From Sminthopsis crassicaudata (Eukaryota): 64,000 bases of DNA. The translations under genes were made by a program, and so were the position numbers. Numbering within the stretch: the stretch's first letter is position 1; every line of letters starts with the position of its first letter. Below are positions 6,791 through 62,749 of the stretch, piece by piece. The stretch lies in NCBI RefSeq assembly GCF_048593235.1, contig NC_133619.1:75034454-75098453 (forward strand), written 5' to 3'. The notes under the pieces are model-generated. The model was given only the letters and a program-made list of their open reading frames with translations. It did no database searches and was not told the origin of the DNA.

Positions 6791-6913
6791 ATATGGTGGA
6801 CTCTTAATAAATACTAGTTTGTTGATTGATTAAATAAGTCAAAGCAAATGAGCAACTTCTCTTCAAGACACAAATGCATTTATCATTTTAAAGTTGAACT
6901 GTTTTTCTTCCAG

Positions 6914-7001
6914 GTTCCTAGAGCCCAAAATATTCATCTTTCAACACATCCTTTTGCCATGCTAACAGCTTCCAAGGCAGTAGAACACGCTCAGACACAA
7001 A
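6914..7001 (+). CDS. C2orf80: C2orf80 internal coding exon (88 nt; [29 protein letters not shown])
   Basis: Bounded by ttttcttccag| and |gtaagc. The translation matches human C2orf80 [29 protein letters not shown] (recalled). C2orf80 is the known upstream neighbour of CRYGA. Confidence 0.88.
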
Positions 7002-7739
7002 GTAAGCTTACTTATTTTCAACTCACTCTCAATTTAAAAATCAATTTTATTGTTTTTTAAAAATTTTATTTGATATTTATTTGATTTTATTGATATTCAT
7101 TAAACATTTATTAAGTACCTACAATGAGTCAGGCACTCTCCTAAGTGCTAGAAATACAATTAATAAAAAGATGGTCTCTGCTCTCAGGGAGCTTTCGATT
7201 TAATACAAGGATACACCACAAAAAAGGAGTTGGAAAAACAATGGAAAAATAGGAGGTATTTAGTCCAGGGGAGTTTTGTCTTTTGAAGTTGAAAACAGGG
7301 AGAACAGTAGATGTAGTGTACAGTGAGCTGAAAAGCCCAGTTTCTGCTCTGTTTAAAAATAGTGAGAAAAGTTTCACAGTTCACCCTCCAGTTCTTCAAA
7401 CAGAGGAGAGAGAAGCCAAAGGAGTTAATCAAGGCTTTAGTTGGTTATGGTGATAAGATTAGTAGCCATGAGTATAACCTATCAGAGGCATCTTCTGTGG
7501 AGTTGCAGCCAGGAAGGGATTTATTGACCACCTTTTGTTTTTATACCATCTACGTTTCATAATGTCTCTCCCTTTAAAAAATTCATTCGTTTGAACAAAG
7601 AATAAAAAAGAGTTAAAAGAAACTAACATTTTTAAAAAAACCCTGCTATTATATGCAGGAGTCTAAGCCTTATCCCTCATCTTTTCAAAGAAACAGAAAG
7701 AAATGTCTTCTCATATCTCTTGTCAATACTTGGGCGTTG

Positions 7740-8620: not shown

Positions 8621-8733
8621 ATATCAAGTTACGAAGGAGAATAGCCCATAGAAATGCTATCAACAGCTCAATTACAACAAAGGCAATGGATCCAAAGTCA
8701 GCAAAGAACTCAGAAAAACAGCCAAAGATAAAA
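8621..8733 (+). CDS. C2orf80: C2orf80 internal coding exon (113 nt; NIKLRRRIAHRNAINSSITTKAMDPKSAKNSEKQPKIK)
   Basis: Bounded by gtccctag| and |gtaagt. Phase 1 is compatible with the previous exon. Aligns with human SVKSRKVTTNKNA...FSDTQPKHK (recalled). Confidence 0.8.
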
Positions 8734-11700
8734 GTAAGTCTAGAAACCCAAAATGGAAGCTATTAAACTGTTATTAAGCTGTTGCTAAATGGTTGAAGAA
8801 AAGCAGACTTATTCCCATTGTTTTTAAGTATTTTTGAGAGTCAGTGTGGAACAGTAGAGAGAGAAATTTATGAGCTTAAAATCAGAAAGATTTAGATTTA
8901 AGTTCTTTGACTCTCACTATCAGATGTATAACTGTGGACAGGTCTCAATATTGCAGTGTCTTGGGCATCTTTCTTTTTAAAAAAAATAGCCTTAATTTTC
9001 AAAATATATGCAAAATAGTTTTCAATATTCATTCTTTAAAAAGCTAGTGTTAGATTAAATTTCTCTTCTGGAAGAAAAAAACACAAAACAAAAGCTAGTG
9101 TTTCAAATTTTTCTTCCTCCTTTCCCTCCACTCCCCTAGATGGCAAGTAAAGGTGCAGATCTGCAATTGCAGAGAGAGGTTCTTATATCAGTGGTTTCAG
9201 TTTCTATCCTTTAAAATTTGCAAAGTGCTTTATATATTTATTATATCACTGGAAAGTCACAATAACCCTATGAAGTAGTTGCTATTATCCCTATTTTACA
9301 GATGAAAAAACTGAGGTCAAAAGAAGTTAAGTGACTTGTAAAGTGGTCCAGTCAGCCTATATCAAATGCATGATTTGAACTCTAATATATCTAACTCCAA
9401 GGCCTGTTTTCTATCCACTTCCCCACCTCTGCCAATTTGTTGAATTGAATTGAAAGGTAGTCATAAGAAATGGCACCCTCAATATCCCTTCTTGATGCCC
9501 TTCCATCTTCTGTTTGATGTCTTATGTTCATATAACCTAGAGGCAAATTTAAAACAATCATCTTGACCACTCAAATTGGTACTTTTACACTAGACAAGTT
9601 CCTTATGTTCTGCAGGTCTCTAAGGAAGTTGAAACTTGGAATCAATGCAACCCAAGACACAATCAAAAAGCACCATCTGAGAAGACAAAACCTTGTGCTC
9701 ACCTCTTCGCATAAATACCAGCTCCAAGTAACACTGGCCCTGCCTCTGTGCTGTACTCTTGTATTTTCTGCTGTTTTGTTGTTTTTTAGAAAACTGTTCT
9801 TCTTCTGACTCAGGTTATTCAAATAGGTGTGGATCTGGCCCTGCTGAGTGTTTTCCCAAGAACTATTGGCAAGGCATAGATCTAGTCTGCTCTATGCAGA
9901 TATTCTGGTGCTGTGAAGTACAATTGAATAGCTTTCCTTGTAATTACTTTCTGGCTGTACTTTTCCCCTTTGCTTGGTGTCTCAGTACATTTCAACTCCT
10001 TGGAATGTTCTTCAAATGCTAACCTCTGCATGTTAAGATAATTGATTTTCCTAAGTAAAAGTTACAATTTCAAAAGGAAAAGAACAAACCTTTATTGCTT
10101 TTAGTGTGTTTTAGTGTAGATATATTTACTTAATGATTGTTTATAATAAAGTACATATCCAACATATTTGAGTGTTTTTCAAGAACATTTTATAAAGAAA
10201 AAGTTCTAGTATTAAGAAAAGAACAGTTATAGCAAATGAGAACAGACATGTAACTGGTGTACCAAACTAGCCAAATGGCCAAAAAATCAACTTGCAAAGA
10301 ATCCATAAGTGAGATGTCCCTGGGATCTGTGCTTGTCTTTATGCTGATTATCAATTTTTTTTTTCTTAGTGACTTGCAATGAGACATGAATATCATGAAG
10401 CAAAACTGAGAAAGATGACTCATGAACTGATAATAGAATCAAGGATAAAAATGTCTTATTTTCAAAGGACATCTCATTTTGTCATTTTTGCTAAGCGATG
10501 GAGAGGTCAGTTACCGAAGTTCTATGCTTCTCAGTGAATTGCCTAGGACTCATATATCATGTCATATTTATAGAGTTAATTCTGGTTTAATTGATGAAGG
10601 GAGTATTTCCATCAAGTAGTTCCCCAGTATTAAAATAACTTTTTACCCCTACAAATTTAATTATATTCTTTAAAGAGGATTTTCTAAAAGATTTAAATTT
10701 TTTATTTTTAAATTTATTTTTGTTTACTTTTTTTGTTTTTAGTTTTTTTTTTTTTAAATTTAAATTCTATAAAAAATTTAAATCATTTATTTTTTATGGA
10801 TCTTTATTTTCTATTGATAAATTGCATTCTTTAATGCCCTCTACAAAGCCATGCCTTAAGAATTAAACTGGAGATGAGTCCAGGTCACCAGCTGTTAGTC
10901 TTGAATGACCACCAGTTTCTTGCTGCTTGAAAAACTTCAGTAGCACATTAAAAATATATCTATGGAGTTAGCACTTTGTTGAAAGTGACATTGTATAGTC
11001 ATGGATGAAAATATTATTAGAATCCATTTTGACCAGAGTGTGACTACCTCAGAACACAATGGAGCATTGCTTATTTTTCTGTGAACTACACTTAGAGGAC
11101 AAGAGAGGAAGAAGTAGGAATAAAGTACAAATTAACAGCTAAGAAATTCTGGCAAATGTGGGCTTAACAGAAATGTAATTAGTACATTTTCCAGCACTGC
11201 TCAGTACACACGAATGCATTTCCTTATAATTACTTCTGTTTGTACTTTTGTTCCTTTGCTTCTATGCTGCCCTAAGAAAAAACTATAGATCCAAAGGTGT
11301 ATAGGTGGTACTATTACCATCCTTATAATTTAAACCTATGGTTTAAAAACTGTTTAAATAAAATGTTGGTCTTATTACTTTAAGAGTATCTGGAATGACA
11401 TCTCCTTTTAAATCTAAAAGTTAGACTAGGGTCTTGCTTCTTTCTCAGGCTTTTACCAATTCTGTCTCTGATGCAGCAAGAGAACATTAAATACTAAATC
11501 TTCACCAGAGACAAGAGATTTGTGCAAATGGATTTTAAGTCATGGATTCCATAATAATTAAAGAACATGGACAAAAATGATTAACTTTTAAACTTTCAAG
11601 GGATTTTTGAGAGAAATACCCCTGAGATCTAAGCTTGGCCCTATTATAATTAACATTTTTGTCAGTGACACAAAGCTGAGAACAAATGATTAATGAACTA

Positions 11701-15056: not shown

Positions 15057-17230
15057 ATGGTCTCTCCTTATTTCAAATCTAAACCACCAGATAAATCTGA
15101 GTCAGGCCCAACTTATAACAATGAAACATTTCAGATTAGAATTCTATTAGATTTTAAGATCCTTGAGGGCTGAACTTGGTCTTCACCTTTATAGCCCCAG
15201 TACTTTGCAGGGTTGAATTGCTGGATTGTTAAATTCATAACATGAATATAATTAACTGAGTGCTGTAACTGAAGGTTTAATCATTGTAAGAGGTTGCCTA
15301 TATAATACATTTTAATTAATATATTAATGAGAATTTTTTCCTCATTTTTATTTTATGAAACAAGAATGACTTTACATGAATAATGATGTCTTAAGGCAAT
15401 GTATATTTTACATTGGCAAGTAATGCCATCTAAAAGGAAGTGAGACTGACTGAGTTTGTCCAGTCAATAAGCATTTATTAAGTTCCTATGATGAGCCCGA
15501 TATATTAGAAAAAGAACATTTGAGAGCAGATCTACTTAGATAATTCAATTTTTAAAAACTTGCTTTTTGTAAAAAAAAATCTATTGCTTTATGTATGACA
15601 GGATAGCAGGAAGAGAATTGAATTATGAAGGATAACTGTCAAAATAGATCAAATATTAATAGTCATAACAAGTATCATTTATATATCATTTTAAGGTTTA
15701 CAAAACACTTTACAAATATTAACTCATTTGATGCTCACAACAATCCTAGGAAGTAGACATTATTAGCCCTTATTTTATAGATAAAGAAATTAAAGCATAC
15801 AGAAGTTGTACCAATAGCATTATTTAGATATATACAGCTAATACATATTTGAAGCCAAATTTGAACTCAGATTTTCCTCATACCTACCCAGAGTTCCATC
15901 CTCTGGGCCACACAGCTGCTTACCAAAGAGTTGTTATGCAAACTTTAAACTTACCCTTTCCCTCATGATATATAGCTATAGCTATAGAAACTGCTGAGGC
16001 TGAACTATGTCTGCATAGGTAATACTAATATATTATAGCTAATGCTATAGCTAATAATCTCCTTCCTCCTCCCTAACTCATTTTATATTTATTTTTTCAT
16101 TAGCTTAACTATGTACATGTTGTTTTTGATTAAAATGAGCCAGTGTCTTGAAGTCAGGGACTATTTATTTCATTTTGGGGTTTATATCTCTAATGCCCAA
16201 CATATTATGGGTGTTTAATAAATGCTTGTTAAATCAACAAATGAATAGATGAATTTCCATTACCTATATAGACAAATTCAAACTAGAACTTCAATTAGGA
16301 TATTGGATAAAATGATAAATTATTTTTTAAAGGTGATATTGAATAGATAGAATGGACTACTAGACATATATTCAGGAAGATATATCCTGCCTTAGATACT
16401 TATATTTAATGCTGATTATGTCATAATTTCTCAATGCCTCAGTTTCTTAATGTATATAGTAAGTGGGGTTAGACTTGATGCTCTCTCATCTTTGGAACCT
16501 CTAGATATTTGAAAGTATAAGTTTGTTTGGGGAATAAAAGATTCAAATTCATGATTTTGTTGTAGTGGGGGAGGGTGGCCACTCCTTCTATCAAAGCAGG
16601 TTATATTATAATTTATGATTTTAGAGAGTTGCCTGGCAGAATTTGAACCTAATTCCTCCTTTCTTCTATCTACTATATCAAGTTCCCTTCCTAAAGTCCA
16701 AAAAATCCTACTCAAAATTTAAACTACACAATTCATTCTCCTCCTTGCATTTTATCTCCCTTTGTGGTCTTACTAATTCATGTTACATATCTCCTATATG
16801 CTTAGGCGACACTTTCCGGGTTCTCCAGATCACACAACTTTAGCATAGGAATCACAATGGAGTTTTCCAAATTCAGGAGTTAACTCACTGGGATTCCCTA
16901 TCATCTGTCAACCCTCCAATTATTTAGGAATATGTCCATTCACGTGCTTTTGCTCCTGACTCAGCCTCAATGCAGACATAGCTCAGCCTCAGCAGTTTCT
17001 ATAGGGACAGAACTCAAAATGAAGTCAATTCACTCATGAAAACATGGGTTTCTATATGGCTGCATAGGATGAGAAGCTGGTCTATTGTGCCTAACACCAT
17101 AATGGCTCTGCTGACTTCAATAGCTTTCACGGGGAGAGCAAGGACAACTCGAAAGTACCAGAGAAAGCAAGAGGGAATTGTCCAATGAACCCCCTGCCCT
17201 GATACTAGAAGGAAAAAAAAAAGAAAACAT

Positions 17231-17308
17231 GAAAATCCCCTCCCTATCCACACTGGGCCTCTTTTGTGTTGTTCTTGCCGATGCAGCAACAGACCCGCTC
17301 TATATATA
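17231..17308 (+). promoter_or_regulatory. Gamma-crystallin proximal promoter, gene 1
   Basis: AAAATCCCC box, SOX site CTTTTGT (17261-17267), MARE-like TGCCGATGCAGCA (17276-17288), TATATATA (17301-17308). Confidence 0.88.
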
Positions 17309-17357
17309 CAAGCGGTCACCACTGTTACACAGAGCTCTGCATCCTAGCCAGCTAAAC

Positions 17358-20034
17358 ATGGGAAAGGTGAGAAAAGCGGGAGGATGTCATAAAGTTGTTC
17401 TTAAATGAAGACAACAATTCCCAAGAGAATGTTCAATAACCTCCTTGATGTTCATTTGTAGATCATCTTCTTTGAGGACCGGGGTTTCCAGGGCCGCTGC
17501 TATGAATGTAGCAGTGACCATGCTAACCTGCAGTCTTACTTCAGCCGCTGCAACTCCATCCGGGTGGACAGTGGCTGCTGGATGATTTATGAGCGCTCCA
17601 ATTATTCTGGGCACCAGTACTACCTGAGAAGAGGAGAGTATCCAGACTACCAGGAATGGATGGGCTTCAATGACTCTATTAGGTCCTGCCGAGCAATCCC
17701 TTATGTGAGTTTCATTTTATGTTGGGTTAATATCATTAGTCAAGGGTTCATATTTTGATATCTCTTTATTCAAATTTAGAGAAAAATAAGGAGTTATAGG
17801 GGATTATAACTGTAGTGAGAATATTTGGGATTATTGATTTAGTGCTGACAAGCTTTGGAGAGCATTGAACCTGTCCCCTCCTCATTTGAAAAAGAGGAAA
17901 ACTGAGTCTCGTAGAGATTAAATGAATTGCTTGAGGTCCTTGAGTATTTGAAAAAGAAAACTATGATAACTAAGTAAATACTGATATTTTTAAGCTAAAT
18001 ATATAAATATTCTATTATGATACTTCTTATTTCAAATGCTCAAAAGATTATGGTTTCAGTGGTGTGGGTGCTTCCTCCATAACTGCATTATATACTCCAT
18101 CATGTCTTAGTTTCATGTTACTACTATGATAAAAAAGGAAGTCATCTGGTATTCAACCTTCCTGACCTTGATGCTGATCTTGATAGCTTCTCGGGTCTCT
18201 GCTCAAAGTCTCTGTAGCTCAGAATGTCTGTGGAAGTTTGGGTGCTGCTAGCAGAGCCTTTTAGTACCCAATATGAGCTTCATATCAAGCTAGAGCTGGA
18301 CATCTCAGAGGCCTCCTCATTTTGCTGATGAAGAGACAGAGTTCAGAAAAGATAAGTGGCTAGAAAACATTAGAAGCTCACGCAATGACAAAATTTAGTG
18401 TTAAACTTAGAGGCCTCTAGAAGGCATCTGAGTGACAGGTGAAGTTCATTATGGTTTGGTGAAAAAGTTATGCTAGATTCATCTAATTTCCATTTGTGAT
18501 AGAGAAATAAAACCAGGGTTTCAGATGAAGTAGCAGAAATGCAAGAGGTCTGGACTTTAGTGGATTATTCTGTAAAGAGTTTATTTTAAAGATGTAGTTA
18601 TTAAGGATTGTGTCAGCCTGGAGAAAAATCTATTTTTATTTGGAGTTCCACAGAGTTTGAGCCTCACCCTAGTGTTACTTTAAAAACATTTTTTTTTTGA
18701 TGAGAATAAGCTTATGCTCATTATATTTGCTGATTATATGGAAGGTATCAACAGACTAGAGAAATAAATTAAAATTCAAGTCAGAAAATGGGCTAATATA
18801 AATAGGTGAAAGTTGACTAGAGAAAAATATAAATAATTCATTTGGATAGGAAAGATAAATACCATGAATTTTAATGTAAAAAAAATAGGATGTAAGAAGT
18901 CTAGCAGATCCCTTGTAAGAGATAGTGACAAGACTGGTGATTTTTGTGATGCAGGGAGTTTCCACGAGGAACGGCCTTTTTTAATATAGGTTGTCATTTC
19001 TGCAAGAGAGAGTTTCCCAGAACACTGAGAAATTAAATGACTAGCCCAAAATCACATGACCTTCCTGGCTTTGAGGCTTGCTTGCTATCTGTTACACTGC
19101 ATTGCCTGTTACATAGAAAAGACTTAATAAACATTAAATTGAATCAAGGGAACTGTGGGTTATAACCCTCAGCATATGTAGTTACAGCAGGCAATACTGC
19201 AAAAAGAGAAGCATTTAGCCCAGGCATTTCATGGGTTGTTTTTGTATTTTTGTGGGGTTTTTTTTTGGGGGGGGGGGGTGTTTTTGTTTTTGTTATATCA
19301 AGAAAAGCTTTTAAGACAGAGGTCTTCTGAGTGATCATGGTTCCTAATCAGACAGATTGCTATTGTTCAGTCATGTCTGACTCTTCATAACCCCATTTGG
19401 GGCAAATATACTGGAGAGGTTTGCCATTTCCTTCTCCAGGTCATTTTACAAATGAGGAAACTGAGGCAAACCAGAATTTAGTGATTTGCCCAGGATCACA
19501 CAGCTACTAATCTAAGGCCGGATTTGAAGTCAGGTTTTCCTGATTCCAGGCCCTGTATTCTCTCCACTGCCATCTTTAATGCTAGCTTCAGGCAAAACAA
19601 CATTATAATGTGAAGGGAAGCAAAATTTCAGAGAGCAAAAAAGATAATGTATTTAGATAATGTGCAGGCAGGCACAAGCTAATCATGTGCCTCCTTCCTG
19701 AATCAAGACTACACTTTTCAATTTATTTCTCATCTTCTCTTACTGTTTTCCCCTTCAACAGACTGGCTCCCACAGGATGAGGTTGTATGAGAGAGAAGAC
19801 TACAAAGGTCAAATGATGGAGCTCACTGATGACTGCTCTTGTGTCCATGATCGCTTCCATATGAATGAAATATACTCTCTTAATGTCTTGGATGGCTGCT
19901 GGGTCCTGTATGAGATGCCCAACTATAGAGGAAGGCAGTTCCTGTTGAGACCTGGCGAGTATAGGAGATACTTGGATTGGGGAGCCATGAACGCCAAAGT
20001 GGGCTCTCTGAGAAGAGTCATAGATATGTACTAA
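17358..20034 (+). CDS. CRYGA: Gamma-crystallin gene 1 (174 aa; CRYGA position, C-like exon 3). Exons 17358-17366, 17462-17704, 19762-20034
   Basis: MGK exon, 243-nt exon 2 ([16 protein letters not shown]...SCRAIPY) and exon 3 ([12 protein letters not shown]...RRVIDMY*). GT-AG sites, no stops. The family call is certain; the symbol is positional. Confidence 0.9.
19358..19588 (-). mobile_element. Mar1-type CORE SINE with RTE-like tail in gene 1 intron 2
   Basis: ttgttcagtcatgtctgactc..tactggagaggtttgccatttccttctcc..gaggaaactgaggca. Confidence 0.8.
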
Positions 20035-20068
20035 ATCAACTTGTCTCTTGTTAGCACTGATATAAAAA

Positions 20069-20074
20069 AATAAA
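20069..20074 (+). terminator. Polyadenylation signal, gene 1
   Basis: AATAAA about 35 nt after the stop codon. Confidence 0.8.
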
Positions 20075-21339
20075 TGTGTAGATTGTATTACTGGCACTAC
20101 TTGACTTTTGTCCTTTTGTTAATGGCATTATTTCATGGATCTCCAAGGGGGAAAATTATCACCCAGAAGGCAATTCCTTTGGTAATGAATTCAGGTAGTG
20201 TTATTCTTGATCTTCAGATACAAGCTCTGCAGGATCATACATGAAGCATCACCAGCTTCAAGAGTCTCCTAGAACTCTCAATTCATTAGCATAGACATCA
20301 AGACTTTATGGTCTTCTCAATATCACAACAAGCCATTAGAATAGAACTTTTGTGGACTGCATAAGTCCAGATAAATGGAAAATTCACTGGTCTGCAACCA
20401 TAAGATAACATAGCTGTGAAAGACATTTATTATAGATCTTATTTTATTGTATATTATACATGGTGGGCAACAGTGTTGATTGGGCACTCACAACATACAA
20501 ACTGTTGTACTAAGCCACAAGCAAAAGAAGGGACAGGGGAGGAAGGAGAAGATAAAGTCTGCATCTTTAGGAAAAAAATAGACTTTAATAGAAGAAGAGA
20601 AGATAAATATGATAATTTATGTTCCCATAGCACTTCAAGATTTGCAAAGTGCTACCTGGGAGGTAGGCAGTAGAAGTATTATTATCTTCATTTTATAGAA
20701 GAGGAGAGTGAGGCACTGAGAAGTTGTGACTTGCTCATGACCACAAAACTAGTGTTTTTATAAAGTATGACTCAAATGCTAATTTCCTATCTCCAAACCC
20801 AGGGTTCTAGACACTACACCAGCTGTACGTCATACAAATGAAAATATTAAGGAAACATATACTTTACTAAAACAATAAAAACAGCTATATAACTAATCAT
20901 AACTAAAATATACTAATGAGTGATCAGAATCCCATGAGATCCAAAGTTTCATGAAATATGGAAGCATTAAAAAACAACAATGACTTTTAACATCAAACCC
21001 AAGTTAGTAAAATGTCACAATACACTTTATTCAACATCATAATCAGTCAGCTTTAGATTACTCCAGGACCCCTCATGATAAAAGGTTAGATTCCATTTTG
21101 TTAAATTGTACACTACACTTTTCTGAAAAAAAAAAATTAGTAACATTTTCTTTTAACTTGGTGTTCCTTGTATCCTTAACACAAGTAATAGTAGTTGCTT
21201 AATAAATGTTTATTGGATTGGATGGATTGGATTTTTCATCCCTTCTCTTTGTACTTATGTAACATTCGCTTTCAATTTTTATGGATATTGTTCCTTCCAT
21301 TTAAGTTGTTTTAGATATTATATATTTTGTTTTCTTGGT

Positions 21340-21900
21340 TCTACTTACTTCATTCTGTTAATGTATTTCTTTTCATGCTTCTTTGTATTCATCATATTCA
21401 TTATTTCTTAGAGCATAATAACATCCCATTATACTCATGTAACACAATTTGTTTAGTTATCCAAATCAATAGGAATCTATTTTATTTCTAGTTCTTTGCT
21501 ACCACAAAAAGTATTACTATAAATATTTTGGTAAATTCTACCAGGTATGTATCCCAAAAGAGATTTTAAAAAACAAAAAGAAAAAAGACCAAATGTACCA
21601 AAACTACTTATAGTAGCTCTTTTTTGGAGGCAAAGAATTAGAAATTATAGGAATGCCTATCTACTGGGAATGGCTATATAAACTGTGATATGTGATTGTG
21701 ATGGAATACTATTGTGCTATAAGAAATCATGAGCAGGATGCTCTCAGAAAAATCAGGAAAGACTTCCATAAATTGTTATAAAGTGACATGTACTGTATAC
21801 AAAGGAATAGCAAGGTGATCAGTTGTGAATGAGATTATTGTTGTCAGCAATATAATGATCTAAGACAACTGTGAGGGATTCATGATGAAAAATACTACAC
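21340..21900. mobile_element. Two old L1 ORF2-end fragments in opposite orientation (antisense about 21340-21531, sense about 21535-21900)
   Basis: The same L1 motif (tttgtggtagcaaagaa..gaaat) occurs on both strands. Confidence 0.65.
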
Positions 21901-22779
21901 ATATCCAATACAAATTGAAGCATGCTTTTCCCCCTTTATTTAATAATAAATATTTATCTTATAAATATTTTCTTTAATAATAAATAAAGAATAAAATTCT
22001 TTGTTTTTCTTGAGGGGTTTTTTGGTATAAGTTTGTTTTTTTTTTTAACAGCATGAATAATGTAAATGTTTTGCACTACACATATATAACCTATATTCAG
22101 TTGCTTGCATCTTCCTTGTGGAGAGAGAGAGAAGAGGGAGTGAATCTGGAACTTAAAATTTTAGAAAGGAATATCAATGTTTTTTTGCATATAACTGTAG
22201 AAACTTTCTTCTATAAATGACTTTTTTTGTAGCATATACCTATTATGTAAGCTACTCTTAATGACTCTAGGTTTCTCCCTGAATCAAAAGCCTGAATTCT
22301 TGGTATGAATTTTTTTCCAGTAATGCTATTATTTTTGATAATACCATTTTACTCTCTTTGAGTCATGGAATACTACAGTCTATGAATAAAGTCGTGGGTC
22401 ACCCAAAAGACAATGGAAAAAAATATGGTGGGCTTGAGTAGGGTACACACTCCTCTCTTATTACTCTTTTCTTTATAGACAGGGGGAAAGAATTTAGTTG
22501 AAGGAAATGTACAAAATTAACAATAAATGCTATGTATGTCAATGAGATAAACTTAACCATGAAATAAAAGAAGACTGTAAAAATAAACTAGAAAGCAGAT
22601 CAACCATATGTTGAATAATCCTTGAGCACCCCACATATTTCAGTTGTATTCACATATTGTCAAAAAATCTATTAGAAGGTACAGCACACATTGGATGAGC
22701 TTCCTTTAGAAGATTTAAAAGAGGACAAGGAGAAGAATTATATTGTATAAGTTTCTTGATGTCTTGTGAAGTCAGTAAT

Positions 22780-23700
22780 TTTTATTTGTTCTGTTATTAT
22801 CTTCAGGGAATTTATTTCTTAGGTCATGTTTTGTTCCTCTTGTTCTAAGCTATTAATTCTCTACCCAATCATCTTCCATTGATGTTATTTCTCATTTTTT
22901 CCCTATAGTATTCTCATTTAATTCTAAAAATATTTTAAATTTGCTTACACTTTTGCTTTATCTCTTCCAAGAATTCTAGTTGAACTTGTGTCCAAGCCAC
23001 CATTTTTTTTCATTGAAGCTTGGTTGGTAGAAGTTTAAAAGTCATTCTCTTCAGGTTTGTGTCTTGAGTGTCCCCATCATCAGCTCTGTATGATCAAGTT
23101 CTTTTCTTGTTTGACCATACTTCCTATCTACTTCCTGACTTGGACTTTCAATAATGTTCTAGGTTTTCAGCCACACAGCTGCTGCTTACTCGTGAACTTT
23201 ATCCTCCTCAGTATAGATCTCCAAACCACTCCTCATCCTAAAACACCAGCCAAAGTATAAGTTTCCCCCTCAGTCCATGTTTCTGGAACTGGGTAATGAG
23301 TGATTGAACTACCAGTTGACATCTCTTCCTGTAGCTTGCACAAAGTTGAGCTGATTCATGTGGAACTTCTTCTTGCCCTGGCTCATAGCCTTGGTTCTTT
23401 TTTGGTTCCTACTTTGGAATATACTTTGTGATATGTGCCTTGCTAGACATGGTTATTGTCCCAGCCTACTGTATTCTGTCTCCCTATGCTTACCTGAACC
23501 AGAAAAATGACTGCTTCTGAGTTTTCTTGGATTTCTCAGTCAGTACTTTGTACATCTAGTGCATTTGCTAGCTCTTTATAGAAGAGTTGTAGTGGAGAAT
23601 GTGGTTCCACTTCTTCCCTGCTATTCTGCCATATTGACTCAGTCCTTAGACACATACATCTTTTGGGCAGGGCCAACATGGGAATTTGTTTTGCTTAGAT
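22780..23700 (-). mobile_element. Old antisense L1 5'/ORF1-region fragment
   Basis: T-rich antisense composition typical of L1 ORF1/5' region. Heavily decayed. Confidence 0.45.
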
Positions 23701-24385
23701 TTTACAAGTGTTTTAAAATTTTTTACTCTTATGAAGGAAAGGTGGGAAGGAGAGAGAATAAATTTTTTCCACTAAAAATAAAATAAATAATTTTAGTTAA
23801 TTTAACCTTTTTACATATATTTCTACACACTCTTAACAAATAATAAAATATTATTTAAAACTAAGAAGGGGGGAAGTTGTATTTTATTTTATCAAGCTGG
23901 ACATGACATAAGGTAAAGAAAAATTTTGTCCTTTTTTTTATCCTATCCAATTTTATCCTTTTAATTACATATAGTAATGTTTAAAGGTGTAACAAGAAAA
24001 CTGTATTAGAGATCAATGTACAAAGAATGCTGAATGTGTAGTCAAAGACCTGGATTTAAATCCCAGCTCTACTATTTACTACCTATATCAGTTCATCTCT
24101 CTGGATAATAGTTCCATCTGGAAAATGTCAAAGGTCATTTCCAGTTCTAAATCTAGATTCTGTAATAATTATCTTATGGAAAATGTTTCTGACTCAAGGC
24201 TAAATATTGGCTGTTAATATAACTAGTAAATACTGATGATTTTGCCTTGGAAAATCTATCATGAGTAGATGAATTAAGAACCAGAAATTACTTTAATTGT
24301 TAACCAAAACACTCAGTCTAACAACCACATGAATGAAACTATAGTTGTATACTAGCCTGCAATCAATCATCTAGTATTTATTGGA

Positions 24386-24598
24386 TGGCAGTTAGCTGGC
24401 ACAGTGGATAGATTGCTGGGCCTGGAGTGGGAAGACTTATTTTCCTGAGTGCAAATGTGGCCTAGGACACTTAACCCTATTTGTCTCAGTTTCCTCTTCT
24501 GTAAAATGAGTTGGAAAAGGAAATGGCAAACTACTCCAGCATCTTTGCCAAGAAAACCCTGAAGGAGGCAGAAAAGACTGAAATGATTGATCAAAAAA
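24386..24598 (+). mobile_element. Mar1-type SINE with RTE tail
   Basis: ggcagttagctggcacagtggatag..ggaaaaggaaatggcaaactactccagcatctttgccaagaaaaccc. Confidence 0.8.
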
Positions 24599-25319
24599 TT
24601 TAGTGAAGAGTTATTATGAATAAGGGCAGAAAATACAAAATAGAATAAGACAGAAGTGGTCTTCATTCTAGTTAGATAAGATCCACACATAAAACAAGGA
24701 GGCTCTGAGAACAAGTCAAAATGGTATAAGTAAAGCATGAATATAGATTGTAGGAGTTACCAGAGTTCAATCCTACACACTGCTCTCCAAACTATCATGG
24801 GTTCCTGCTGCTTCAGCAGGACTATTGTAAACGATTAACCAAAGATGCTGAAAATCACAAGACCAGCCCAACATTTGAGAGATTTGCTGACAATGAGGAC
24901 AATACTAGGACTTTGGAACAGTGTAGAGGAACAGTTTGTGGTAGTGTGTTTTAAGCATTCTTAAGTTAAAGAAATCTTCCTCTTAAACAAAACTTGACTG
25001 GAAATTCTGCAGTAGTATTCCTTTTTTCATTGATTCACCTGTGACGTGAGGGACCCAGTCACTCTTAACAGAATTTTTATTTAGTTTACTGCCCCCACCT
25101 AGGAAACCAGGAAAAGACAACTTTTTCATTGTATTCTCTTTATACGCAGGTAGATTTCTTATTTGTATTCACACCATTTACAATATTATAGAATAAAGTT
25201 TTATGAAAAACTGATGACAAAACAGAAATCATAAAATGTATACTTGCCTGTACCAAAAAAGCAGATATCCATAATAATTACTTAAGGGTCTAGATATGAA
25301 AATACCTCTAATTGAAGAC

Positions 25320-25326
<7 letters not shown>

Positions 25327-25375
<49 letters not shown>
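25327..25375. repeat. (AC)24 microsatellite
   Basis: Direct reading. Confidence 0.95.
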
Positions 25376-25377
<2 letters not shown>

Positions 25378-27427
25378 TTTAAATCCTATTGAGATGTTGG
25401 TGGAATTTCTAGGGAGTTGTTTGGTACATGGAGATTAAATTTCTTGCCCAGAGTCACATAACATTTATTTGTCAGAGATAGAATTGAGCCCACTTTCCTT
25501 GATTGTAGCTCCCTATACACTACTTTACTTAGCCTTTTTTTTTTTTTTAATTAATCTTCCAAAATAATCTCTAATGGGAATAATCCAATGACAAGAACAA
25601 CTGAATTTGCAATTTTAGTGGATGGAACTGGATCATGGTTCTATTACTTTTTACTTTATGAACTTGAGCAAGTCATTCCTCCCCACTGAATCCAGTTTCT
25701 CAACTGAAAAATCAGAATTAGATTAGATAAGATAGTTGTCTTTAAGATCAAATTTCACTCTTCTTTCACACCCTGGATTTCATTTTATTTTTCCATGCAC
25801 TCTTTCCCTCTTTTATCTCTTTGCTATTATCCAAGTTTCTATTTAATTAGCCAATAATTCTTATTGAGAAATTGTTATATATTCAGCTCTTTGTCAGGTA
25901 GAGTGGGAAAATATAAAGTAAGTCTGATGTAATCCATGCCTTCAAGTAGCTTAAAATTCATTTGATGACAGAAGAAAAACACATATGAAAGGATAACAAA
26001 CAATACAATACACTACAATTGATAATTAAGCACTAAATGATGCCATATAGACTATTAGCACCATAATCATTTTATGCAGAATTGGAATAACAGAAGAAAC
26101 CATGAAAGAGAAGGAACTTGGCTTGGGCCTTAAAAGCTGGGTAGGTTTAAGGAAGATTAAAGAGTGAATAAGAAGGTAGTTGTAGGCCAGGTCGTTGAGG
26201 TTGGAGACTGAAAGGAAAAAATGAGACAATTAAAGCCTTTAATAGTTAATAAAAAGAGACTTCTTTAAGGATAAAACATACTAGCATGATAAATGTGAAA
26301 ATATGTTTAGAAGAATTACATATGTTTAATCTACATTGGATTATTTGCTGTCTAGGAGAAGGGGGAGGGAAAGAGAAAATTTTGGAAGACTTGGTTTTCC
26401 AAGGGTGTATGTTGAAAACCAACTTTGCATGTATTTTGAAAAATAAAAAGCTTTTTTTTTTTTTAAAAGGATAAAGCAAACTAATCAATAAACAATAATC
26501 AATAATCAAATAAAATGCTCATTCAGGTAAATGCAACCTCCCTTTTCTCCATACAGATGCATCTAAGCATTAGAATATGATGAGACAGTAGGACCTCCAC
26601 TAAATTTAATGGGCCTTTCTTCTATCCTTAAGTAACTAAGAAGTCACACCAATAACTCAAGCCTTAGTCCCCTGGATTGAATCTTGGGTACATAATTTCC
26701 TTGTCTTTTAAGAGAAAAAAAATTAGTCTAGTCTCCATAGTAAGGTCCCAAGTAGATATGCTGCTACCACAGAGAGCATCCTGGGAAATAGATTCCTTCA
26801 GAAGAGGCAATTTGGTGATATAGCAATTAGAGAGATGGACCTGGACTAAGGAAGACCTGCATCCAAATCCTGCCTCCAACACTTACTAGTTGTAATATCC
26901 AGGGCAAGTCACTTATCCTCTGTCTGCCTTAATTTCCTCAACTATGAAATGAAAATAATAATAATAGCTTAGGATTGTGGTGAGGATCAAATGAGATAAT
27001 ATTTGTAAAGCACTAAGAACTATGCATGGTACATAGTAGGCCTCTTTCCTTCTTTTATTTCTCTTCTTCCATTGGTAGGACATCAAGCACTGACTACTTT
27101 GTAGGCTAAATAGGAGAAATTCCTCTTGATTGATAAACTCTCAAAAATTAACCATTAAAAATAATTTAGAAAAAAAATAATTTAGAGTTTTTAGAGTAAA
27201 AAATTTTGATTCCCACCATTTCTTTATTTAAGTAATACAATAAGAGCTACAATATTTCCCTTGTCCTATTCCCTTTTCTAAACCTGTCATTTCTATACCA
27301 CCTATCTCCAATGACCTCCAAAGCACTTATGTCTGCAATGATATAAGCCTCGAATGCACCAGAGAGAATGGCAGCAATGCATACAATGAATGGCACTGAT
27401 AATATAGAGTGAGGGGAAAAAAGGGAA

Positions 27428-27508
27428 GAAATCCCCTTACTGGCCACATTCAGCGGCTTTTGTGCTGCTATTGCAAACCTAGCAAAAGCCCTGTGGGGTA
27501 TATATATA
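27428..27508 (+). promoter_or_regulatory. Gamma-crystallin proximal promoter, gene 2
   Basis: AAATCCCCTTAC, SOX CTTTTGT (27457-27463), divergent MARE TGCAAACCTAGCA (27472-27484), TATA (27499-27508). Confidence 0.85.
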
Positions 27509-27565
27509 GGAGGACCCATCACAGCCAACTACTTCACTGATTTGTGCATCTCCAGGGCATCAAAC

Positions 27566-28393
27566 ATGGGAAAGGTGAGTGAAGAATATGGGTCGGTTAA
27601 CTTGCTTTATTGAAATGTGTTTTTTGATTGATTCTTTTTATTGAATGACATTTTCTTGGTGCAGATCATCTTCTATGAGGATCCAAATTTCCAGGGCCGT
27701 TACTATGAGTGCAGCAGTGACCACCCCAATCTTCAATCTTACTTCAGCCGCTGCAACTCTGTGAGGGTCGACAGTGGAAGTTGGATGATCTATGAATACC
27801 CCAATTACTCAGGCTGTCAGTACTACCTGAGGAGGGGCGAGTATCCTAACTATCGAGAGTGGATGGGCTTCAATGACTCCATCAGATCTTGTCGCAATAT
27901 CCCTCAAGTATGTACTACCTCATCTTGATTTGTAAAGAAAAAGATACAGTTGGTACAGATAAATATATGTAATAGGCTATTTGCTTGAGTAGTCAAAAGT
28001 GTAAAATAATCATTAGAAATTTGACAATTTAGACCAAATTCCAAGGTCAGCATGTTCTGATATATGAAAATATTTATCAATCATGTTTATGCCAGACTGG
28101 CTTCAAGGACCAAAATGATTCCATAGGGAACCCTAGAGGAAAAAAAAATACATTTTTGAAGGAATTCAATTCATAGAATCACAGAATTTCAGAATTAGAA
28201 GGGACCTATTGGCCAAATAATACAATTTATATATGAAAATAATTCCTACTATCTCATTCCTAATAAGTGGTTTTCTAGCCTTTACTAGAGGACTTCCAAA
28301 GGCTTAACTGACAAAAAAATTTCCATATTTGAATAATCCTATCGTAGTATATTTATATTGCAAAATCCAATAATCATGTGGAAGATATATATT

Positions 28394-28447
<54 letters not shown>

Positions 28448-29725
28448 TGTGTATATGTGTACATATTTTAAAATGTATACATATATAAAACCTGAGGGTC
28501 TTCCCCTCCTAGATTTATTTATCTATCTATCTATTTATATATTTATTTTCTTTTTTGGATTATGTGAAAGAGGAGATTTTTTTTTTACCTTAATTGCTAC
28601 CTAGCTTTAATCACTGAATTGGATGTGGCCTCAGCCACTGTTGTTGCAGTTCTAGCTTAAAAAGGCCAAGGTCTCCCATTGCATCCAAGCCATCTCCAGT
28701 CATCCTGATCTATATCTTGCCACTGGACTCAGATGGCTCTGGCGAGGAAAGTGAGGCAGATCACCTTGCACAGTCCATTCCCATTTAAAGTCATTTCACT
28801 TGCATGTCATAGCATCACCTCCTTGATATCATGTTCCTCTTCAAGAACAAAAGACAAACATCAACCTCTGAGTCAAGCCATATGAGAAAGAATCTAATTC
28901 AACTCCAAAAGCATTCATTTAGTATTGGCTATGTGCAAGGCAAAGATAATGCAAAGTAATGCAAAGACAAATGTGAAATAGTTATAGAGTCATAAATTTA
29001 AAGCTAAAAATATAACTTAGAGTCTACCAAGTCTAACCCTCTCATTTTGCAGATGAGGAAGTACAGAGAAGATTAGTGACTTACCATCTCTTAGAGAGCT
29101 TAAAAGATTATAGAAATAGAGAGGATAATTCTATATAATGTTGATATTTTTAAACTAGTCACCTAGCCTATAGGCCAATTAAGTTATGTCATGCTTTTAT
29201 TTTATATATATATATATTTTAATTTTCAGAGTTTTTTTTTATCATTGAACTTGAATACATGTAATACTGTTCTGTAGGATCACTGGATTCTATATAAGCA
29301 TATATAGAATATATAGTCCAAATATGGACTCTATTTTATTGTATATTAAGCCAGTGTCCATTTGGGAAGGCCAGGAAATGCATAAAATAGTTCTAACTGA
29401 AAGATGTTTAATAATTTATTTTTCCATTCTCTTGTGTGTATCAAACCAGCTGACCAGTTCTCACAGGATAAGGCTGTATGAAAGAGACAACTACAAAGGC
29501 CTAATAGCAGAGCTCACCGATGATTGCCATTGCATCCAGGATCGATTCCATCGCAGTGAAATCTACTCCCTTAACGTGCTAGAGGGCTGCTGGATTCTCT
29601 ATGAAATGTCCAACTACCGGGGAAAACAGTACCTGCTGAGACCAGGAGAGTACCGTACCTTCCAAGACTGGGGAAGCATGAATGCCAAAGTGGGCTCATT
29701 TAAAAGAGTTGTGGATTTTTGTTGA
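27566..29725 (+). CDS. Gamma-crystallin gene 2 (175 aa; extra paralog, D-like exon 2 and A-like exon 3). Exons 27566-27574, 27665-27907, 29450-29725
   Basis: MGK / [16 protein letters not shown]...SCRNIPQ / [13 protein letters not shown]...KRVVDFC*. Canonical splice sites and an intact frame. No one-to-one eutherian name. Confidence 0.92.
28396..28439. repeat. (TA)22 microsatellite in gene 2 intron 2
   Basis: Direct reading. Confidence 0.95.
28620..28865 (+). mobile_element. RTE-related SINE / RTE 3' end in gene 2 intron 2
   Basis: aaaaaggccaaggtctcccattgcatcc..ccatctccagtcatcctgatctatatcttgccactgga..catcacctccttgatatcatgttcctcttcaagaa. Confidence 0.7.
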
Positions 29726-29756: not shown

Positions 29757-29762
29757 AATAAA
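29757..29762 (+). terminator. Polyadenylation signal, gene 2
   Basis: AATAAA 31 nt after the stop codon. Confidence 0.8.
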
Positions 29763-38107: not shown

Positions 38108-40358
38108 ATGGGAAAGGTAAGACCACAGGAAAGCAACGCTGAACCAGTGTATTTATACAAGAGAATGGTTTTCTCAACCCTCCCCAATATTTCATTTTAC
38201 AGATCATCTTCTATGAGGACCGCGGCTTTCAGGGCCGATCCTATGAATGCAGCACCGACTACCCCAACTTGCAGGCCTACTTCAACCGTTGCAACTCCAT
38301 CCGGGTAGAAAGCGGCTGCTGGATGGTTTATGAGCGCCCCAATTTTTTGGGCCATCAGTATTATCTACGAAGGGGCGAGTATCCAGACTACCAGCAGTGG
38401 ATGGGATTCAATGATTCCATCAGGTCCTGCCGAATCATCCCTCAAGTAAGCATCATCCCATTTGAAGCCTTGTTGGAAAGTCAAGTACCTTAATTCTTTT
38501 CTCAAATCAAACCTAGCTAGTCTGTGAATGGTTGCCTCAGAGAACAAAGTGTTTCTCTCAGGAGTCTGATGACTGGTAAAATCTCTCAATCTATTGATTT
38601 TTCTTTGGTTCTGTTGCCTTTTAGTTATAGGACTCCAGGGTCAATATTTTAAAAGCAATAAAGAAATTAGGGAGGTACAAAGATTCTTGAGTTAATAACT
38701 ACCATGGAATCAGAAGGATTATAAAATTAGCCTTAAAAAGTTTTATCAAAGAATAGCTGCTCTGGTCCATGTTAAAATTAAATCCAATACATTAAATTTT
38801 CATAAATTTAATTTAGAAATTCTGATTGTATTCAGGTATTTTGTGTTTTCCCACTATTCAATCAGTCATTCCAGAAGATTTAATACTTAATACCACTAAT
38901 ACTTAGTGGTGAGAGAATGAAGGAAAAAAATGGGGAGGAAGAGGAGGTAAGCTGGTACAGTAGCACATTGAGGAGATGGTCAGAAAGTCGTTTGATATAT
39001 TCTGTGATTCTGGGGAAAGTATCTGGGAGTCATTGAATATTTTGCTGGAAAGATAATGTATTATAATAAAAATAATGCTTAAAGAATATCTCTTGCTACT
39101 GAGGGTGGGATAAGAAGGAGATGATAAGCTTGTACAGAGAGAGCACATTTGGTGTAGTAGATGGATTTGGAATCAGAGGAGCTAAATTCAAATTGTAACT
39201 CTTTCATTTACTATCAATGTGACCTTGTACAAATTATTTTCTCTCTCTTGGCCTCAATTTCTCATCTGTAAATTGAACATATTGAATGAAAAGATCTCTA
39301 AGGCTTTTTCCAGTTGAAATCATAGAATTCTAGAAATGGAATCAATAGAACAGCCTGTGTTCAAGGTGGTTTGGGTCTGAACAAGGCTGGAGAGAAAAGA
39401 GAATATATGTGACTATAAAGGTTTAAGAATCCCAGGATTGGAAAAATTTATAAAAATTGGACTTAGGGAAAATAGTTTAAAGATGATTCATCTTAAAATG
39501 AAAATATATCATGCTTAGCTTTCCAGTTCACACTTTCCTCATCTAATATTTATGTAGCACTTTAAGATTTGCAAAGCACTTTACTTATGGTAATTCATTT
39601 ATAGCAATTTCCTCTAATACTAAGGATAAAAATGATGTGGTAAATCTTACTTTAAGAAAGCTATTTCATAAAAGACAAATTGATAAGGGATGCATGGGAC
39701 TACTGGACTCTATTCCTAGCCATGCTTAAGGATCATTATGCGACTAGAAGATTGTTGTTGTTCAGTCTTTTTTTCAGTCTTGTCTTACTCTTTGTGACAT
39801 CATTGTGGTTTTCTTGGCAAAGATACTGGAGTGATTTACCATTTCCTTCTCCAGGTCATTTTACAGATGAGGAAACTGAAATAATCAGGGTTAAATGACT
39901 TACCCAAAGTCACACAGCTAATGTCTGAGGCCAAATTTGAACTCAGGTCTTCCTGACTAGATTCAGCAAGTGGGGGAGACAATGTTTGTCTTGTTAATAA
40001 AATTGGAATCCAGAAGATTTTAAGTAGGAAATTTTTGATTACTTTCTGTTTCATTATTTATTTCTTGTTTCTATTATTACAGCACTCTGGCTCCTATAGG
40101 TTGAGATTCTATGATAGAGATGACTTCAAAGGACAAATGATAGAACTCATGGATGATTGTCAGTCTATTCAAGACCGCTTCCATATGAATGAAATACGCT
40201 CTCTCAATGTGTTAGATGGCTCCTGGATCATGTATGAGATGCCCAGCTACAGAGGAAGACAGTACCTTCTGAGACCTGGGGAGTACAGGAGATATTTGGA
40301 CTGGGGAGCCATGAATGCTAAAGTTGGTTCTTTTAGACGGGTCATGGATTTTTACTGA
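38108..40358 (+). CDS. CRYGB: Gamma-B-like crystallin (175 aa). Exons 38108-38116, 38203-38445, 40083-40358
   Basis: Long linker PQ-HSGSYR; YDRDDF; [39 protein letters not shown] as in bovine gammaB (recalled). Intact ORF. Confidence 0.9.
39752..39968 (-). mobile_element. Mar1-type SINE in gene 3 intron 2
   Basis: ttgttgttgttcagtc..ttggcaaagatactggagtgatttaccatttccttctcc..gaggaaactga. Confidence 0.8.
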
Positions 40359-44744: not shown

Positions 44745-45858
44745 AGGTGTTTTATTTTTCCAGTTACATGTAAAGATAATTTTCAACCTTCATTTTTATA
44801 AGATTTTTGAGTTCCATATTTTTTCTCCCTCTCTCTCTTACCTCCCTCCTCCCCAAGACAGCAAACAATAGGTTTTACACATACAATCATTTTAAACATA
44901 TTCCCATAGTAGTCATATTGTGAAAGACAAATCAAAACAAAAGGGAAAAACCATGAGAAAAAAGAAATAAAAATAGTGTGCTTCAATTCACATTCAATCT
45001 CCATTGTTCTCTTTCTGGATGCAGATGGCATTTTTCAATCCAAGTTTATTGGAATTGTTTTGGATCACTGTATTGCTGAGAAAAGCCAAGTTTATCATAG
45101 TGGATCATCACACAATCTTACTGTTACTGTGTACAATATTCTCCTGCTTCTGCTCATTTTCACTCAGCATCACATCATGTAAGTCTTTCCAGGCTTTTCT
45201 GAAATCAGTCTGCTCATCATTTCTTATAGAATACGGATATTCCATACAGAGAGGCCTGGAGAGACTTACATCAACTGATGCTGAGTGAAATGAGCAGAAC
45301 CAGAAGATCGCTGTACACTTCAACAACAATACTGTATGAGGATGTATGCTGATGGAAGTGGAAATCTTCAACATAAAGAAGATCCAACTCACTTCCAGTT
45401 GATCAATGATGGACAGAGGTAGCTACACCCAGAGAAGAAACACTGGGAAGTGAATGTAAATTGTTAGCACTAATATCTGTCTGCCCAGGTTGCATGTACC
45501 TTCGGATTCTAATGTTTATTGTGCAACAAGAAAATGATATTCACACACATGTATTGTACCTAGACTATATTGTAACACATGTAAAATGTATGGTATTGCC
45601 TGTCGTCGGGGGGAGGGAATAGAGGGAAGGGGGGTAATTTGGAAAAATGANNNNNNNNNNNNNNNNNNNNNNNNNNNNNNNNNNNNNNNNNNNNNNNNNN
45701 NNNNNNNNNNNNNNNNNNNNNNNNNNNNNNNNNNNNNNNNNNNNNNNNNNNNNNNNNNNNNNNNNNNNNNNNNNNNNNNNNNNNNNTCATATGCCCTAAC
45801 TTAATCAGCCATTTCCCAACTGATGGGCATTCATTTAATTTCCAATTCCTTGCTATTG
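44745..45858 (-). mobile_element. Antisense L1 3' end carrying a nested, younger sense L1 3'UTR (about 45248-45650, running into the gap)
   Basis: The antisense L1 text resumes after the gap (tcatatgccctaacttaatcagccatttcccaactgatggg). Confidence 0.8.
45651..45786. other. Assembly gap (N x136)
   Basis: N run. Confidence 1.
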
Positions 45859-47645: not shown

Positions 47646-47804
47646 NNNNNNNNNNNNNNNNNNNNNNNNNNNNNNNNNNNNNNNNNNNNNNNNNNNNNNN
47701 NNNNNNNNNNNNNNNNNNNNNNNNNNNNNNNNNNNNNNNNNNNNNNNNNNNNNNNNNNNNNNNNNNNNNNNNNNNNNNNNNNNNNNNNNNNNNNNNNNNN
47801 NNNN
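47646..47804. other. Assembly gap (N x159), entered from a SINE starting at about 47536
   Basis: N run. Confidence 1.
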
Positions 47805-56687: not shown

Positions 56688-56967
56688 NNNNNNNNNNNNN
56701 NNNNNNNNNNNNNNNNNNNNNNNNNNNNNNNNNNNNNNNNNNNNNNNNNNNNNNNNNNNNNNNNNNNNNNNNNNNNNNNNNNNNNNNNNNNNNNNNNNNN
56801 NNNNNNNNNNNNNNNNNNNNNNNNNNNNNNNNNNNNNNNNNNNNNNNNNNNNNNNNNNNNNNNNNNNNNNNNNNNNNNNNNNNNNNNNNNNNNNNNNNNN
56901 NNNNNNNNNNNNNNNNNNNNNNNNNNNNNNNNNNNNNNNNNNNNNNNNNNNNNNNNNNNNNNNNNNN
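56688..56967. other. Assembly gap (N x280)
   Basis: N run. Confidence 1.
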
Positions 56968-62398: not shown

Positions 62399-62749
62399 AT
62401 GGGAAAGGTGAGCAAAGCTTGAAGATTCCACAGAATGTCTTTGGGGAATTGGCCCACATGTAATTTGTGAGGAATCTGGCCCATGATCATTTTTCTTCTG
62501 TTTCAGATTACCTTCTACGAAGACCGTGGCTTCCAGGGCCGTTACTATGAGTGCAGCAGTGACCACTCCAACCTCCAGTCTTACTTCAGTCGCTGCAACT
62601 CTGTGCGGGTTGACAGTGGCAACTGGATGATCTATGAGCAGCCCAACTATTCAGGCTGCCAGTACTACCTGAGGAGAGGAGAGTATCCTGACTACCAGGA
62701 GTGGATGGGTTTCAATGACTCCATCAGGTCCTGCCGCATCATCCCTCAT
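62399..62749 (+). CDS. CRYGD: Gamma-D/E/F-like crystallin, partial. Exons 62399-62407 and 62507-62749; exon 3 lies beyond the window
   Basis: [23 protein letters not shown] and IPH are D/E/F-type features (recalled). It follows the C-like gene. The donor gtgagt is at 62750. Confidence 0.82.

Follow-up and report, generated by a model that had tools for sequence, protein, structure and literature searches.

The window analysed here, a stretch of 64,000 nucleotides of NC_133619.1 from the fat-tailed dunnart (Sminthopsis crassicaudata), contains five tandem, three-exon gamma-crystallin genes, all on the + strand, which we label g1 to g5 in strand order; exon 3 of g5 lies past the window end. We focus on g1 and g2, which occupy the interval between C2orf80 and g3 (gamma-B). 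An initial annotation had described them as two intact genes at this position, which their structures confirm (both also bear promoters), and as reciprocal domain mosaics derived from CRYGA, a proposal that we could support in part for g2 and not for g1. Every gene has a 9-nt coding exon 1 (ATGGGAAAG) and a 243-nt exon 2, exon 3 measures 273-276 nt, and splice sites are GT/AG throughout. In g1-g4 and in exons 1-2 of g5, exon 1 consists of ATG plus two codons, introns are in phase 0, and exon 2 and exon 3 each encode one domain of two Greek-key motifs. Searching the whole window with tblastn returned exactly nine exon 2 or exon 3 matches and no relic exons between the genes. The features of g1 and g2 are as follows.

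17233-17308, + strand: g1 proximal promoter with the conserved AAATCCCC element and a TATA box (17301-17308), from an alignment of the five promoters.
17358-17366, + strand: g1 exon 1 (Met-Gly-Lys), followed by a GT donor.
17462-17704, + strand: g1 exon 2, N-terminal domain with two Greek-key motifs (Pfam PF00030), ending in SCRAIPY.
19762-20034, + strand: g1 exon 3, C-terminal domain plus stop.
20069-20074, + strand: g1 polyadenylation signal AATAAA.
27429-27506, + strand: g2 proximal promoter with the AAATCCCC element and a TATA box (27499-27506), the most diverged of the five promoters.
27566-27574, + strand: g2 exon 1 (Met-Gly-Lys).
27665-27907, + strand: g2 exon 2, D-type N-terminal domain with the signature YYEC, SDH, NSV, SGC.
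29450-29725, + strand: g2 exon 3, C-terminal domain with a gamma-A-like start string and the end VVDFC plus stop.
29757-29762, + strand: g2 polyadenylation signal.

Both products carry two PF00030 domains (Pfam E-value 1e-67 for g1 and 2.5e-62 for g2), and residues 1-174 of g2 match gamma-B/C/D/E/F structures in the PDB at an E-value of about 1e-85. A TATA box lies 57-67 nt 5′ of the ATG in all five genes, together with the conserved AAATCCCC promoter element, and AATAAA is found 32-38 nt 3′ of the stop in g1-g4. The locus has the layout of the mammalian CRYGA-CRYGF cluster: a head-to-tail tandem array by C2orf80, lens promoters with a TATA box, three exons of which the first has three codons and each of the others encodes one two-Greek-key domain, and products that carry two PF00030 domains and match solved gamma-B/C/D/E/F structures over their full length. 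It differs in that marsupials have six genes in total, in the order g1, g2, B, C-like, c4 (g5 in the dunnart) and c5, of which c4 and c5 are D-type; two genes stand where eutherians have CRYGA, and only B is clearly one-to-one.

To place the two halves of each protein, we built separate domain trees from about 80 proteins, with 43 from marsupials or monotremes, 27 from eutherians and 7 outgroup sequences from amphibians or fish. All cross-species comparisons were made at the protein level, and their 81 columns for the N-terminal domain (N-domain) and 90 for the C-terminal domain (C-domain) limit power; the echidna row is a long branch that may lie outside the cluster, its locus having no neighbouring crystallin gene. 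In the N-domain tree, which had the form (g1,(c4,(c5,g2))), g2 joined c4 and c5 with high support (100/95, or 97/98 with marsupials only), pairing with c5 (99/83), and g1 joined this group next (98/85). A consensus comparison of D-type with A/B/C-type N-domains, covering both infraclasses, yielded four D-type signature positions common to g2, c4, c5 and eutherian D/E/F; g2 matches at 4/4 and g1 at 1/4. The C-domain tree was discordant for g2. It recovered eutherian A, B, C and D/E/F clades, with c4 and c5 joining D/E/F (98/81) and the g3 C-domain grouping with eutherian gamma-B (96/91 and 91/61 in two trees), whereas g1, g2 and g4 formed one A/C-type clade with eutherian A and C (95/92). The interior of that clade is without resolution; the g1 C-domain was basal in it, and that of g2 was sister to eutherian (A+C) in the maximum-likelihood (ML) tree (70/85). 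These alignments provide moderate evidence that g2 would combine a D-type N-domain with an A/C-type C-domain, and its first domain was probably taken long ago from a D-type neighbour.

The other half of the proposed swap was not supported. The identity counts behind it are exact (79/90 residues between g1 and g4 in exon 3, 71/81 between g2 and g5 in exon 2), and so are the quoted gamma-A-like strings, SCRAIPY at the end of g1 exon 2 and the start of g2 exon 3, whose counterparts in Mus caroli gamma-A (SCRSIPY at the end of exon 2, and an exon 3 start string resembling that of g2) match. However, the g2/g5 value is hardly distinctive, because g1/g5 is nearly equal in exon 2 (70/81), and the likeness of g1 to g4 is about the same in exon 2 (~83%) and exon 3 (~86%), leaving g1 without a clear mosaic signal. 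Across seven marsupials, g1/g4 identity was steady in the N-domain (66-69/81) and ranged in the C-domain from 70/90 (wallaby) up to 79/90, with 76-79/90 in 5/7 species; g4 is the nearest C-domain paralogue of g1 in most of them. Against eutherian A, B, C and D, the g1 C-domain scored nearly level (208-211 bits, with g4 slightly ahead at 214), and its closest eutherian class by mean identity was D. It behaves as a slowly evolving, consensus-like sequence.

Nor can g1 exon 2 be called A-type. All eutherian N-domains fell into one clade, and within it the A, B and C proteins grouped by species or order and not by gene (Pan B beside Pan C, manatee B beside elephant C, Molossus A beside Myotis C), a hallmark of concerted evolution. 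This homogenisation means that an A-type exon 2 is not definable. g1 is the first gene of the cluster and adjoins C2orf80; its N-domain groups with g2 and the marsupial D-type genes, only its terminal Tyr being A-like, and its C-domain does not group with eutherian gamma-A. Forcing a clade of g1 and eutherian A in the C-domain was rejected by the approximately unbiased (AU) test in a first set (p = 0.023). The g2 N-domain, placed in the D-type clade, does not group with eutherian gamma-A either. A reciprocal domain swap of CRYGA is therefore only partly supported and has no demonstration here, its g2 side having moderate support and its g1 side (an A-type exon 2 in a mosaic gene) none.

The history that we favour, with a probability of about 0.5, would make g1 and g2 ordinary functional gamma-crystallins that arose by tandem duplication, after which exon 2 of g2 was converted by a D-type neighbour. 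What follows on the direction of the exchange, its mechanism and the sequence of events is inferred. A member of the A/C-type lineage would have duplicated in tandem on the marsupial stem, at about the time of the split from eutherians or later, but before the living marsupial orders separated. Gene conversion from a c4/c5-like D-type neighbour would then have overwritten the exon 2 (N-domain) sequence of g2, followed by fast early change of the g2 C-domain and then stasis. g1 would have been conservative throughout, and hence still resembles both g4 (C-like) and the family consensus. Conversion would then have ceased, each paralogue evolving independently across marsupials since.

Several observations fit this sequence. 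Every marsupial paralogue group was monophyletic across species, and a GENECONV-like permutation scan found no significant conversion tracts (global p > 0.4 for all pairs), so that any exchange must be old and have ended before the orders diverged. GC content at third codon positions (GC3) is higher in exon 2 (0.54-0.73) than in exon 3 (0.49-0.58) across the window genes, whose intron GC content is 0.31-0.36, and the difference between the exons is consistent with GC-biased conversion in the past. In the tree, a long stem branch (0.16-0.21) leads to the g2 C-domain, yet this domain is at least 90% conserved among marsupials, a pattern suggestive of an early shift and strong constraint thereafter. 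Of the three models put forward in the initial annotation, patchwise conversion comes closest to this history, although the tracts that it might have left were not detectable.

A number of results weigh against it. Silent sites are saturated in all paralogue pairs (proportion of synonymous differences, pS, 0.47-0.95) and hence permit no dating: in exon 3, g1/g4 (0.51) is no closer than g3/g4 (0.47), and in exon 2, g2/g5 (0.60) is no closer than g1/g5 (0.58). Exon trees from synonymous sites, which had been suggested as the discriminator, are unworkable for the same reason. In the wallaby, g2 and c5 share 70/81 residues in the N-domain and 61/90 in the C-domain (Fisher p = 0.006); g3/g4 shows a similar excess of N-domain over C-domain identity, and both lose significance after correction for 15 comparisons. 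AU tests were only borderline when the g2 C-domain was forced into the D-type group (p = 0.064 with all taxa, 0.41 with marsupials only) or when the N-domains of g1, g2 and g4 were forced together (p = 0.063). The full-length tree clusters all non-B marsupial genes (74/77), a result that also fits independent duplications in each lineage. It may also be the exon 2 of eutherian CRYGA that was converted, g2 keeping the ancestral state.

These points bear most directly on a history without any exchange, in which g1 and g2 would be plain whole-gene duplicates, of each other or of neighbours, shaped by unequal rates (g1 and the dasyurid g4 slow, the g2 C-domain fast), N-domain conservation and a few convergent residues. 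Protein-level exon trees gave discordant ML topologies for g2, and AU tests did not reject g1 and g2 as sister duplicates (p = 0.25 for the N-domain, 0.31 for the C-domain and 0.29 at full length) or a C-domain grouping of g1 with g4 (p = 0.37). The lack of tracts, the near-level scores of the g1 C-domain against four eutherian classes, the 70/90 of wallaby g1/g4 and the absence of real heterogeneity between the g1/g4 nucleotide identities of exon 2 (80%) and exon 3 (85%) all suit such a history. It sits poorly, however, with the high support for g2 in two different clades, D-type by its N-domain and A/C-type by its C-domain, and with the full set of D-type signature residues in the former, and we consider it rather unlikely, if still to be taken seriously. 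In another model of the initial annotation, a single copied block, running from C-like exon 3 to the D-type promoter and exons 1-2 and inserted into intron 2 of an ancestral CRYGA, would have created both genes at once. g1 exon 3 is indeed nearest to g4 and g2 exon 2 to the D-type genes, and g4 and g5 are adjacent in the required order. However, the self-comparison of the window (dot-plot and BLAST) aligned nothing but exons, interspersed repeats and some 220 nt of proximal promoter, and the dot-plot of 19.7-27.9 kb against 50.4-62.8 kb, which had been suggested as a check, revealed such repeats and no collinear homology; relic exons are likewise lacking. The g2 promoter is not specifically g5-like (59% identity, against 57% to g1, with g1/g5 at 67% and g4/g5 at 64%), and although promoter alignments keep some signal, none of it singles out g2/g5 or g1/g4. 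Alignments of intron 1, both intron 2 ends and the 3′ flanks were at background level and without signal. The motifs cited earlier for a g1 3′ flank more like that of g2 than that of g4 do exist, but identities of 52% (g1/g2) and 51% (g1/g4) do not discriminate. Moreover, the closest relative of g2 exon 2 in the tree is c5, which lies past g5, although grouping it with c4 was not rejected (p = 0.45), and the insertion calls for the A-type g1 exon 2 that is not demonstrable. We regard the block insertion as the least probable of the histories weighed here.

Eutherian CRYGA could instead be the derived gene. Marsupials would then keep two ancestral therian genes, one g1-like and one g2-like, and CRYGA would be a secondary product, heavily converted or, as in the remaining model of the initial annotation, formed by a deletion fusion, that joins the 5′ half of g1 (promoter, exons 1-2) to exon 3 of g2; the mechanism of a fusion would be the unequal crossing-over behind Lepore-type genes (haemoglobin delta-beta). 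Such an origin would account for an A-like hallmark split exactly at the exon 2/3 boundary, with IPY in g1 and the gamma-A-like start string in g2 exon 3, and g1 adjoins C2orf80 as eutherian CRYGA does. Among eutherian proteins, gamma-A scores highest for g2 exon 3, with a narrow lead (207-203 bits, versus 199-197 for g1), and a C-domain clade of g2 with eutherian A was not rejected (p = 0.43). As a proxy for eutherian promoters, we translated the upstream parts of annotation models that start upstream; those of squirrel and vole CRYGA matched the g1 upstream region best (48 and 39 bits), with no match or 24 bits for g2. However, the upstream extension of a gamma-B model was also best on g1, indicating that this signal is not A-specific, and the ML C-domain tree joins eutherian A to C and not to g2, whose exon 3 has the same mean identity to A (66.3%) as to C (66.8%). 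An outgroup with two genes at the CRYGA position was not found either: the echidna locus (L001 10001-11453), the only one examined and itself of uncertain location, contains one gamma-crystallin gene, and the 10 kb to each side of it are free of further crystallin exons. The points in favour of the fusion come down to a single residue (the Tyr that closes exon 2), a brief motif and synteny, and a derived CRYGA of either kind strikes us as improbable.

The favoured history, duplication followed by conversion of g2 exon 2, would make g1 and g2 a lineage-specific paralogue pair in a well-known family, with exon-wise concerted evolution of a familiar kind. Their domain-per-exon architecture, combined with concerted evolution, makes gamma-crystallins a textbook example, and exon-limited concerted evolution of their clusters, through exon 2 conversion, has long been known. 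Exon-2-biased conversion was reportedly described in rodent (rat) and human gamma-crystallin genes by den Dunnen et al. in 1986 and by Aarts et al. in 1988. The marsupial genes resemble those of rodents and humans in that exon 2 and exon 3 phylogenies are discordant, and eutherian exon 2s cluster by species or order. By contrast, marsupial exchange appears ancient and stopped, with monophyletic paralogue groups and no tracts: sequence exchange within the marsupial cluster ended long ago, whereas homogenisation of exon 2 went on in eutherians. Crown marsupials are estimated to be more than 80 million years old. If well dated, a domain exchange fixed for over 80 million years would be a natural experiment on the interchangeability of the two domains.

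The more immediate use of the result is to correct orthology labels and to help name marsupial lens proteins. Cluster look-ups at a threshold of at least 90% identity returned g2 orthologues in 11 marsupials, including the didelphids Monodelphis and Gracilinanus, and g1 orthologues in 9 Australidelphians, including the kangaroo Swiss-Prot entry CRGD_MACFL (Q5EF39), which we take to be a lens cDNA. Both dunnart genes are already in public annotation under inconsistent names. The g1 product corresponds to residues 44-217 of the NCBI model P0005 and the g2 product to model P0145, and g1 is called "D" at NCBI and Swiss-Prot and "C" at Ensembl, whereas g2 is "D-like" at NCBI and "A" at Ensembl; these entries, CRGD_MACFL among them, represent the same genes, and neither C-domain falls in the D-type clade. 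The kangaroo g1 orthologue has been treated as the gamma-D representative in the literature (PMC11118217). CRGD_MACFL belongs to the g1 group and its C-domain lies outside the D-type clade, so that kangaroo "gamma-D" is better read as the g1 orthologue. The literature searched included no published work on the marsupial gamma-crystallin cluster or on a CRYGA mosaic.

Petaurus shares the dunnart order DUF5563, g1, g2, and in Macrotis and Petaurus the accession numbers of g1, g2 and B follow one another in that order. In the opossum maps (Monodelphis and Gracilinanus) the order is g2, a gap of more than 8 kb, B, a 175-residue gene and c4, with spacers shorter than those of the dunnart, and Gracilinanus has a single 226-residue model in place of Monodelphis B plus another gene. 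In neither species is a gene called in the 10 kb upstream of g2. No didelphid g1 protein was among the matches; the collection lacks further opossum cluster proteins as well, so this does not imply absence of the gene. The g2 orthologues have peculiarities of their own: a C-terminal Cys (VVDFC) is present in 13/13, nearly all other gamma-crystallins ending in Tyr or Phe, and exon 2 in dasyurids (Sminthopsis, Antechinus, Sarcophilus) has Pro in YEDPNFQG where other marsupials have Arg, alongside YEYPNY and YPNYREW variants.

The upstream neighbour and the remaining cluster genes of the window, which served as comparators, are listed below. The first C2orf80 match was obtained by tblastn with residues 52-82 of P0076, the DUF5563 part of a fused eutherian model (64.5% identity, E-value 3e-8). 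The exon 2 product of g5 is identical to that of Monodelphis c4.

6911-7003, + strand: C2orf80 (DUF5563) exon match, upstream neighbour of the cluster.
8623-8751: second, weaker C2orf80 (DUF5563) exon match, upstream of g1.
38108-40358, + strand: g3, the gamma-B orthologue (exons 38108-38116, 38203-38445 and 40083-40358).
48964-50719, + strand: g4, gamma-C-like, with SCCLIPQ and AKAGSL signatures (exons 48964-48972, 49082-49324 and 50447-50719).
62399-62749, + strand: g5, the D-type marsupial c4, exons 1-2 only (62399-62407 and 62507-62749).

In the same four RNA runs of Sminthopsis crassicaudata, the share of sampled gene words that is present amounts to 0.20-0.52 for g2 and 0.26-0.48 for g1. 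Exons make up about a quarter of each gene stretch, so these shares are exon-sized. A further six runs, from three other organisms, contain 0.20 of the words of the g2 gene and do not appear in the g1 listing; near relatives whose g2 exons are almost identical may be their source.

The NCBI model of g1 (P0005, 217 residues) takes an upstream ATG as its start, and its reading frame crosses the TATA box and the 5′ untranslated region before it reaches the true Met-Gly-Lys start (17229-17366). Models of Sarcophilus g1 (P0174) and wallaby g2 (P0144) have similar upstream extensions, and such extensions of g1 and g2 models are probably annotation artefacts. Three runs of N lie in the g3/g4 and g4/g5 spacers (45651-45786, 47646-47804 and 56688-56967). 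Interspersed repeats, for example at 19360-19570, 24468-24563, 26282-26495 and 39767-39956, are scattered through introns and spacers in either orientation, and every non-genic self-match of the window traces to them; some copies also match the echidna locus and are MIR-like.

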